Source: Phallusia mammillata
Lineage: Eukaryota
DNA: 64,000 bases
Assembly (NCBI GenBank): GCA_965637545.1
Contig: OZ281501.1
Coordinates: 15,190,001-15,254,000, forward strand
Direction: 5' to 3'
The stretch's first letter is position 1. The number at the start of each line of letters is the position of its first letter. A program made the position numbers and the translations under genes. Shown in pieces: positions 1,623 through 4,600 of this stretch. Under the pieces are notes generated by a model. It was not told the DNA's origin. It made no database searches and saw only the letters and a program-made list of their open reading frames with translations.

Positions 1623-4600
1623 ACAAAATGGAGGACGGAGTGGGAAGAGACGAGCGCCTTGATGCACGAAAAGGAGAATAAAAGAGAAATAGTTACGTCG
1701 AGTGCTCCTGTTTCTCCTGCAAGGAGCTTGGATAGACCGATCATAAAATCGGTTGCGGACGCCATGACTCAAACTGAAGTTAGCTGTGGCCCACTACAGA
1801 CGAACTGCCCTCTATGTGGTGAAATAAGAGAGGCTACCCCAGAAAAAAGCAAGCGGAAATCTACTACTGGTAGAAGGTCAATAGAAAAGTCTACGAAGAA
1901 AAAGAAAAAATCGAGCAGGTCAAAACAAAACGATAAGACGAACGTTGCTGTATCTCAAAGCAGAAGGAGTAAAACGCCGAAGGAAAATGCCAATTCGCTT
2001 TCAAATCAGGTCGATCACTCTAGTAGCTCTTCAGTTGCAACACAAAACTTACTAGAATCCCCTAAGAGGCGAACAGAACGATCAAGTACATTCTCGGGTC
2101 CACAAAGCACCACCGAAAATACACGAAATTTTTCCTTAATTGAAAGACGCCATTCTTCGTCACCTAAACGTGAAATCGTAAATGCGTTTAATCGGCCAGA
2201 GCTAAAATCAACTATAGCTATAGCTCAAGCGGTAATGAGATCGTCCAGCATTCGCCCTGACTTCTCGCACAGTAAAAAGATATCTCCCAGCCCAGGGAGT
2301 TCGTTTAAGAAAGTTGAACCTAAAAGTAAAGTGTCAAATCCCTTTGAGGACGGTTACAAGGATCCGGAATCTCCTGAAAAGAGTCTTCATGAACACGACT
2401 CCCATAGGACAGGGGAAAGGGTAAATCCATTTTCCAGGTCTGCAAGACCAAGCTCGTGGAGTAATTCACATAGACGGCATCAAGTGTCAGACTCTTTAAA
2501 TCCGTTTGCAAATGGCGAAAGCAAAGATGAAGATGGGGACGATCAAGTTGTAAAACTTAAACGACTTGACAGCACCGACTCGTTAAACCCTTTTTTAGTA
2601 AGCGATGAAGAGGAGGGTACAAATCAACATACATCAGTAGCAGATTCCGATAGTAAGCATTCCTTAAATACTTCCGATCCTTTGCTTCCACCAAGTTCTT
2701 CCGACCAGCAGGATGTTGCCAAAACGAAAGACAAGCTCCAAACCACTGAAAACCTGAGCAGCAAGCCACCCACCTCGCCAAATCCAGCTCATCGCTTTCT
2801 TATGATGGCTGGGATGACACCTCGAACCCCTAACCCTCCTGCTCAAAAGCGAGCACCACATAAACCCTTCCTGACTCCGACTCTTCCAAGAAGCAGAAAA
2901 CTTGACTTTAGCTCTTTTCGGATAACTCCAAACAACAGTGGCGATGTTTCTCGCCGAAAAGTCTCTACCGAGAGCCTACTTTCCTCCAGTTTTTCGGAGT
3001 TTAAAAGTTCACTTAAGCTTCCCTCGATCTCATTACTGCCACGGAGGCAAGATGACAACATCCCGCCTGCCATTAAAGAGCAAAGTCCAGAAAAATCTGT
3101 GCCCGAGAACCAGGAGATTTCAGACGAAGTTGAAGAGACCGAGCTAGAGAAAGAAGAAGATCAAACGGATTTAAAACCAATCGTTTTCAAAAAGATGTCG
3201 GAGTTGGACGAAAGTGACAACGAAAGCGAGACTGTTACTCCTTCCACGGAAAGTTTAAGCGATGGCAATAAACTTGAATTGAGCGACGATGAAAGTTTAG
3301 AGGAAGTCACTGCGTCATCGTCTTCCGAAGAGGAAGATTCGGAAAGCAGCGGTTCTGAGTCTGAATATGATAGAGAAGAGGAAAGCACGGACGACCCAAA
3401 TCTGCTGAATGTTAATTCGTCATTTGACGACGCGAGAAACAAACTTAAATGGGAAAATACAAAAACATCTGTAGGACGCTCTTTATCTGAATCCGCTGTT
3501 TGTACATTGCTATCATCAGCTCTTCCACGTTCTCAAAACCATCAGGGAAGCGTTGAGGACTTGGCAGAGAGCGATTACAGTTCAGAGGTCGGTTCTCACG
3601 TGACCAGTGACGCAATGGAGGCAGACCTCGACGACAGTGACGTGTCACCAATCAGACGAAACCTGTACAGCAAACACTTACGATCGATTCAGCATCATAA
3701 GAACGTTGAAGACGGCCAAGATCCCCCGAGCAGAAAAAGCACCAGGGACAGCGGGTATATGACCCCAGATGAGGTGAAGCTGAGACGAAGTCCTTCACAT
3801 AAACCTGCGCGGGCTTTGGGCCCTGTGGAGCGGAGAGCAAGTAAACGATACGCCGTGGATAATATAAGCCAATCTGTGGATACAAGTGGTGACAGATCCG
3901 ACACTGAATCCGTAAAATCGGATTTAAGCAACGCGTCGCGTCTTAGCCTTCCAACACTGCAATCGATAATCTTTGCAAACAAGTCGATCACAGGTTTCGT
4001 TCCTCCTGAATGGATCTGTCGGGTCTGTTTCAAAACTCTTGAAATGCAGAAAAAATCTGGGGATTGGTTTAAAGTTGTGTCCAAACAGGATGGTACAAAA
4101 TATCAGCAAAAACAGAAAAAGCAACGACATTCAGTGGCATCTATTCCACCTCCATGCGTTGCCAGAGCGCGCCAAAGAGCTGTACTTACACCAGCAAGAC
4201 CACCTGTGCGGGCCTCTAGTTTTACCCAACCCAATCAAATAAAGTCTCAGGAACAAAGGCCTATTACCCGCAGCGCATCGGCGTCGTATGTTAGACACAG
4301 GACGTTTAAACCTCGGGCCCAGGCCTTACAAGCTGAGCATTTGTCTATGAGCCCAGTATACCAGGCTCTCACTACTGAAGCCTCGAAGAAAAGGTGGATT
4401 CCCTCAAATGACAAGCCACCGGTTTCAGAGAAAATGCGAGCGGAACTTGTCAAGATTGTACCAGGTCGATTTTGATAGAAATCCTGGGCTTTATCTAAGC
4501 CGATAGCTTTATCCAACTAAGTTGTTTTTGTCATAGGCCGAGTAATGGTTAGGCTAAACAGCAGATGTGGTTTCATACGACCTCTCGTCCGTAATTAGGC

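Follow-up and report, generated by a model that had tools for sequence, protein, structure and literature searches.

A Slp-homology Rab-binding domain probably split by a disordered insertion of about 800 residues in a 5′ exon of a Phallusia mammillata gene with myosin light chain kinase layout

A stretch of 64,000 nucleotides from Phallusia mammillata (GenBank assembly GCA_965637545.1, contig OZ281501.1, positions 15,190,001 to 15,254,000 of the forward strand; hereafter the window) contains a + strand open reading frame (ORF) at 1320..4475, which encodes 1051 amino acids (aa) in one long frame and has a GC content of 0.46 versus 0.37 in its flanks. Our analysis makes it likely that this ORF encodes a Slp-homology Rab-binding domain, that its exon is one of the alternative 5′ exons used by a myosin light chain kinase (MLCK) gene, and that a surface loop of the domain, lying between Cys pairs 3 and 4, has grown into a disordered insertion of about 800 aa. 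The insertion was transcribed and kept in the spliced mRNA, and in profile comparisons the two halves together scored as a complete canonical domain. The predicted structure suggests that the distal knuckle and the helix of the second Slp homology segment (SHD2) pack on the N-terminal part as they do in rabphilin-3A and melanophilin. The split FYVE_2 domain is thus a variant of a known domain, present in a narrowly distributed group of proteins without a name in the searched databases. A preliminary description of the window, made from its letters alone, had placed the pairs C68-C99 at the N-terminus and the fourth pair together with SHD2 at residues 898-917, with 796 open codons in between, and these positions turned out to be exact.

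Profile and alignment evidence for one domain in two halves

When the ORF product was scanned with Pfam, FYVE_2 (PF02318) was matched with 49.6 bits (cut-off 27.2) in two collinear stretches, the first aligning aa 11-107 with profile positions 2-89 of 118, and the second aligning the distal piece with profile positions 93-114 (14.2 bits when scanned alone). Orthologues gave 54-67 bits with the same profile, and the match was likewise divided into two collinear pieces in three of them (P0001-P0003). Comparison with solved structures showed that the N-terminal part corresponds to residues 14-100 of melanophilin (2ZET_C, E 4e-8), and the distal block to residues 97-118 of rabphilin-3A (1ZBD_B, E 0.0018), which are exactly the fourth Cys pair and the SGAWF motif of the latter protein.

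A hidden Markov model (HMM) was built from the 51 canonical domains found in this analysis, and different constructs were scored against it. The N-terminal part of the window protein alone gave 67.0 bits, and the N-terminal part joined to the distal block gave 97.1 bits. When the N-terminal part was joined to 20 random pieces of the insert, the mean score was 68.7 bits and the maximum 71.7 bits; when it was joined to the region of CPLC, the score was 69.2 bits, i.e., a gain of 2.2 bits. The joining of the halves produced a gain of 30-37 bits in 8/8 orthologues. The HMM search with joined halves, which the preliminary description had named as a check, accordingly returned a full-domain score.

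The nine split proteins (the window protein and its eight relatives) and the 51 canonical domains were aligned with MAFFT, giving 60 rows. In this alignment the canonical fourth pair was placed on C900/C903 and the SHD2 Trp on W916, all three of which were invariant; C68/C71, C88/C91, and C96/C99 were invariant too, which gives eight Cys in four CxxC pairs. Within the first Slp homology segment (SHD1), whose helix is the main Rab-contacting helix in homologues, V23 and D27 were invariant, and L12, E16, R26, and R37 were nearly so. The sequence (S/T)GxW(F/Y), which is expected 8-12 residues past the fourth pair in SHD2, was found as SGDWF, and the distal WxCxxC...SGxWF block was kept in all nine split proteins. 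Neither of the two outcomes that the preliminary description had named as refuting its proposal was thus observed.

The window protein resembles the SHD/FYVE_2 domains of rabphilin-3A, Slp3/4/5, melanophilin, and MyRIP in having an SHD1 helix, four CxxC pairs, and a W-x-C-x2-C sequence followed by SGxWF. The usual compactness of FYVE_2 (a contiguous domain of ~120 aa, with ~10 aa between Cys6 and Cys7) is not found in it: its CxxC pairs lie at residues 68, 88, 96, 163 (CPLC), and 900, with no others, and the gap between the third and the fourth pair of the domain is 800 aa. In the split proteins as a group, Cys6 and Cys7 are separated by about 486-872 aa, instead of the 8-25 aa of the known domains. 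Unlike Slp1-5 and rabphilin, the window protein carries no tandem C2 domains, since the Pfam scan gave no C2 match in the 1051-aa product and I-set, fn3, and Pkinase exons follow instead; unlike the Slac2 proteins melanophilin and MyRIP, it gave no match to Rab_eff_C (PF04698) in the same scan and falls outside their clade. The assignment to the Slp family in the preliminary description thus holds for the type of SHD and for the position in the tree (see below), but not for the remainder of the protein, where exons with the layout of a myosin light chain kinase take the place of C2 domains.

Relatives sharing the split

Relatives were collected by a word-indexed search and then by a profile search of 1.84 billion representatives, which yielded 94 matches. 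The word-indexed search returned P0001-P0003, three proteins with the same split, and in total eight further split proteins were found (P0001-P0007 and P0009), all of them full-length with 737-1150 aa. In each of the eight, SHD1 and three Cys pairs lie at the N-terminus, and the distal block, W-[IV]-C-[KR]-[VI]-C followed by ten residues and G-x-W-F, appears only after 488-872 aa, the inserts measuring 486-870 aa. The canonical spacing at the same point, given as roughly ten residues in the preliminary description, was measured in about 50 proteins resembling Slp, MyRIP, or melanophilin, which are all the other matches with both parts; it was 8-25 aa, and 10-12 aa in most of them. The split in the window is not due to chance, as eight other proteins share it.

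One match departs from the canonical spacing. In P0082, a Slp-like protein of 1315 aa that contains C2, pairs 3 and 4 are separated by 98 aa, and the Pfam match likewise stops at profile position 88. Judging from its sequence, P0082 gained an insertion at this loop independently of the split proteins. A tree built from the columns of the joined domain grouped all nine split proteins in one clade (support 99/97), which is located on the Slp side of the tree, apart from MyRIP and melanophilin. This agrees with the insertion having arisen only once.

Exactly four CxxC pairs were universal among the nine split proteins, seven of which have no other CxxC at all. Identity among the split proteins was 13-43% in the insert versus 42-77% in the N-terminal domain, and only one island of the insert was widely shared, a short (R/K)FLxMAG helix. 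NPF motifs, four of which are present in the insert of the window protein, were found in P0001 (3) and P0003 (3) and in none of the other six relatives. The 13-residue island at aa 805-817 looks like a DSGxxS/T phosphodegron. Downstream of the domain, the helix at aa 1035-1046, with the pattern L-x-K-x-V-P, was kept in all relatives.

Two further proteins among the matches have unexpected domain combinations. In P0087 (1326 aa), a complete canonical FYVE_2 domain precedes a pair of I-set Ig domains and a Rab_eff_C segment; the architecture may be genuinely unusual or stem from a merged gene model. P0010 (289 aa), in which a double-stranded RNA-binding motif (dsrm) comes after a Slp4-like FYVE_2 domain, is probably a chimeric prediction.

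Transcripts retaining the insertion

Four public runs (X1, X5, X11, and X12) were placed on window positions 1001-7000. Run X11 behaved as genomic DNA, being colinear and without joints. In run X1, one contig of 5274 nucleotides (nt) covered 1252-4461 with no internal joint and no mismatch, and then showed three GT..AG joints, 4464|5030, 5223|5669, and 5822|6885, none of which was present in X11. The first of these had been read as 4461>5027, and the cut was shifted by +3 to give 4464|5030, a junction that keeps the frame. As this contig is spliced downstream and colinear across the insert, it represents a spliced transcript keeping the entire insert.

Runs X5 and X12, which come from two other studies, contained low-depth fragments of the exon, including 1461-1809 and 1491-1954, which read through the 5′ boundary of the insert with no joint. 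The main contig of these runs (2091 nt) begins at 5029 behind 29 letters from a different upstream exon, and these letters were not found in the window. The large exon is therefore an alternative 5′ exon, and the acceptor at 5030 serves at least two transcript forms. In X5 and X12 the Rab-domain exon belongs to the minor form, with a depth of 3-6 versus 40-52. All four runs, i.e., X11 and the three RNA-like ones, matched the window stretch with 0-3 differences.

The Rab-domain exon belongs to a gene with myosin light chain kinase layout

The X1 contig joins the Rab-domain exon to Ig and FN3 exons, up to position 7000. The exons past 5030 encode, on the same strand, I-set, fn3, Pkinase, and a C-terminal I-set domain, of which Pkinase and the last I-set lie downstream of the positions on which the runs were placed. 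From this predicted Ig-FN3-kinase-Ig layout, the host gene is probably a myosin light chain kinase gene. The arrangement is also found around the relatives: an AG|GT donor at a conserved V-P-G codon was present in four loci (the window, L001, L002, and L003), and Ig, FN3, and/or kinase exons followed the Rab-domain exon on the same strand in L002, L003, L004, and L005. The link to the kinase gene is therefore also conserved.

In vertebrates, internal promoters of MYLK give rise to long MLCK, short MLCK, and telokin. The window gene is like vertebrate MYLK in that an internal 5′ exon provides one isoform with a separate N-terminus ahead of the Ig-FN3-kinase-Ig exons common to the forms, and unlike it in that this isoform carries a Rab-binding domain. 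To our knowledge, no MLCK isoform with a Rab-binding domain has been described, and our literature search found no paper linking SHD to MLCK.

Two of the relatives' loci are of interest for their gene structure. In the locus of P0003 (L003, 3115-9704), the Rab-domain, Ig, FN3, and kinase exons lie within ~6.6 kb with introns of ~200 nt, and this genome is far more compact than that of the window. In the locus of P0006, an ORF for Transposase_1 is located in the intron region between the Ig and the kinase exons (L004, 19797-20366).

Predicted structure of the split domain

In the model that AlphaFold2 produced from the 60-row alignment, the predicted local distance difference test (pLDDT) values lay at 90-97 in SHD1 and at 78-95 in the finger, and residues 890-940 reached 81-95. 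Over residues 126-875 the pLDDT was below 50, and 73% of the insert residues are polar, charged, Pro, or Gly, which agrees with the earlier surmise that the insert is probably disordered. A strand at residues 99-100 was placed beside residues 899-900 in the model. The model was compared with 48,161 PDB chains using VIA. The first hit was rabphilin-3A (1zbd_B; Z 6.7; 110/124 aligned; model residues 7..920), the second was melanophilin (2zet_D; Z 6.6; 127/141 aligned; model residues 4..928), and the fourth was the Slp4 zinc finger (5x6t; 53/53 aligned; model residues 64..910). Foldseek placed 2zet_C first; as disorder makes up 85% of the model, its E-values were weak, and the VIA comparison was the more informative of the two. 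The proposal of the preliminary description that the domain folds around a giant loop is supported by the retained insert, the invariant distal block, the score of 97.1 versus 67.0 bits, and the superposition of the AlphaFold2 model.

Several observations weigh against this reading. When AlphaFold2 was run on the four closest sequences, the finger had a pLDDT of ~60 and the distal block one of 41-62, and a Foldseek search with this shallow four-sequence model returned no PDB match. The VIA Z scores of 6.6-6.7 are modest in absolute terms. The 60-row alignment carries canonical domains across the gap, and the model based on it therefore leans toward the canonical fold by construction; it is compatible with that fold and is not independent proof of it. 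Furthermore, the RNA nature of the runs was inferred from their spliced joints, and assembled contigs may drop minor isoforms.

Alternative explanations

The alternative that stands up best, though we regard it as unlikely, is that the N-terminal part and the distal block are two separate modules which never reassemble, the distal block being an independent Rab-contact or zinc-knuckle motif and the N-terminal part binding one zinc or using another second ligand. The low confidence of the orthologue-only AlphaFold2 model for the finger and the distal block fits with this explanation, as does the entropy cost of closing an 800-aa loop, and CPLC could serve as a local partner in the window protein and P0001. 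Two independent modules would, however, hardly explain why pair 2, the canonical partner of pair 4, is invariant in 9/9 split proteins while 7/9 have no other CxxC, why W898, the C-x2-C spacing, and the interval up to GxWF match the canonical domains exactly, or why joining the halves adds 30-37 bits and the family-informed model docks the distal block. As a replacement for the fourth pair, which was a suggestion of the preliminary description, CPLC was rejected: it is present in 2/9 split proteins (the window protein and P0001), and joining it adds only ~2 bits.

The preliminary description had also proposed an exitron, whose removal (~744-792 codons within the exon) would restore a compact Rab-binding form and leave the retained form as a precursor or a non-binding isoform. 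Ten in-frame GT..AG pairs are indeed available, including donor 1618 with acceptor 3993, and rare variants are dropped from contigs. Nevertheless, none of X1, X5, and X12 showed an internal joint, the spliced X1 contig was colinear through the exon, and the candidate sites have a poor consensus and no pyrimidine tract. Moreover, the insert is open and has conserved islands in nine lineages, unlike intron-like sequence. We therefore discarded the exitron as the main form and consider the explanation as a whole improbable. A misassembly, a retained intron, or a pseudogene mimicking a split domain, for which we saw no evidence, is extremely improbable, given that X11 and the three RNA-like runs agree with the window, the independent assemblies of the eight relatives show the same layout, and the GC content of the ORF is raised.

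Proposed mechanism

FYVE and rabphilin fingers are cross-braced, with pairs 1 + 3 and pairs 2 + 4 each holding one zinc. By analogy, the second zinc site of the split domain would take its ligands from pair 2 (C88/C91) and from pair 4 in the distal block (C900/C903), which is supported by the invariance of pair 2 in proteins where no other candidate partner exists. Zinc ligation would turn the ~800-aa chain into a closed loop with both of its ends tethered and would set the SHD2 helix next to SHD1 for the binding of Rab-GTP. From the conserved ligands and the superposition on 1ZBD and 2ZET, the predicted partner of the SHD1 helix and SGDWF would be a Rab from the Rab3/8/27 group in its GTP-bound state. 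The Ig-FN3-kinase-Ig part of MLCK might thereby be placed on Rab-marked vesicles, with the loop acting as a flexible scaffold that shows NPF, DSGYxT, and the FLxMAG helix to other partners.

A more far-reaching and rather doubtful possibility is that the split itself is functional, so that zinc closure couples the competence for Rab binding to the display of the loop motifs and, together with the kinase, provides a direct pathway from Rab to the regulatory light chain of myosin II that is not known in other animals. NPF would in that case be recognized by EH-domain proteins, and DSGYxT would be a phosphodegron-like site.

Comparison with known systems

Loop insertions in FYVE_2 domains have been mentioned for SPIRE and RIM1 in a previous report (PMC11231147). 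The insertions in SPIRE, RIM1, and P0082 range from tens of residues to ~100, i.e., they are five to eight times shorter than those of the split proteins, and those of SPIRE and RIM1 may lie in another loop. A feature search of the Atlas ranked Spire-like clusters first, which we treat as a lead only. Our literature search found no description of a split FYVE_2 finger.

The PH domains of PLC-gamma and alpha-syntrophin are examples of a small fold that is interrupted in a surface loop and reassembled from distant segments. Unlike in these split PH domains, where the inserts are folded SH2/SH3 and PDZ domains, the insert of the window protein is a disordered chain of ~800 aa located inside the zinc-binding site, and closure would therefore depend on metal ligation. 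The split FYVE_2 domain would thus represent a natural small zinc finger interrupted by ~500-870 disordered residues between its metal-ligand pairs, kept in nine lineages and in mRNA. It could be used to test what distance between its halves a metal-stabilised fold tolerates and what a doubly tethered loop does. Such domains are under-reported by routine domain scans and ORF-based annotation, as the main Pfam match ends at profile position 89 and the relatives are without names.

Regarding the kinase, melanophilin and MyRIP recruit myosin V and VII directly. The Rab-effector N-terminus on MLCK, unlike these proteins, suggests vesicle-localised activation of myosin II.

Features of the exon and of the downstream gene

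Table 1. Features of the Rab-domain exon and the downstream exons, in window coordinates.
Feature	Position	Strand	Support and remarks
Alternative 5′ exon	1252..4464	+	5′ untranslated region from ~1252, ATG at 1320; 1048 aa plus first base of next codon; X1 contig, frame check
SHD1 helix, aa 9-50	1344..1469	+	Pfam FYVE_2; 2ZET_C match; AlphaFold2 helix 14-52 with pLDDT 90-97
Cys pairs 1-3 (C68/C71, C88/C91, C96/C99)	1521..1616	+	Invariant in the 60 alignment rows and the nine split proteins
Insertion of 796 codons (aa 102-897) in the Cys6-Cys7 loop	1623..4010	+	Contiguous contig; composition; pLDDT <50; orthologue spacing
CPLC (aa 163-166), extra Cys pair	1806..1817	+	Window protein and P0001 only
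Four NPF motifs (aa 340, 369, 394, 423) in insert	2337..2594	+	Motif reading; in a subset of relatives
Short helix (R/K)FLxMAG (aa 491-498) in insert	2790..2813	+	Kept in 8/9; AlphaFold2 helix 489-496, pLDDT 55-67
13-residue island (aa 805-817) in insert	3732..3770	+	Common to P0001 and partly P0003; not in P0002
Distal block: W898, C900/C903, SGDWF (aa 913-917)	4011..4070	+	Pfam profile 93-114; 1ZBD_B match; conservation; pLDDT 81-95
Continuation of SHD2 helix to ~aa 940	4071..4139	+	AlphaFold2 helix 915-940; VIA alignment to 2ZET_D up to model residue 928
C-terminal helix (aa 1035-1046) before exon end	4422..4457	+	Conservation; AlphaFold2 pLDDT 83-86
Intron 1, GT..AG, phase 1	4465..5029	+	Joint in X1, absent from genomic X11
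Exon 2, first half of Ig (I-set) domain	5030..5223	+	Contigs of X1, X5, X12; also in second transcript form
Exon 3, second half of Ig domain	5669..5822	+	Joints in X1, X5, X12
FN3 exon start	6885..7027	+	X1 joint and domain match
Pkinase exons	10856-13140	+	Domain match downstream
C-terminal I-set domain	15271-16051	+	Domain match downstream

In the intron between the Ig and FN3 exons, run X11 gave many short contigs at 6192-6241 and 6660-6689, with a depth of up to ~1000 versus ~300 elsewhere, which suggests a dispersed repeat inside this intron.

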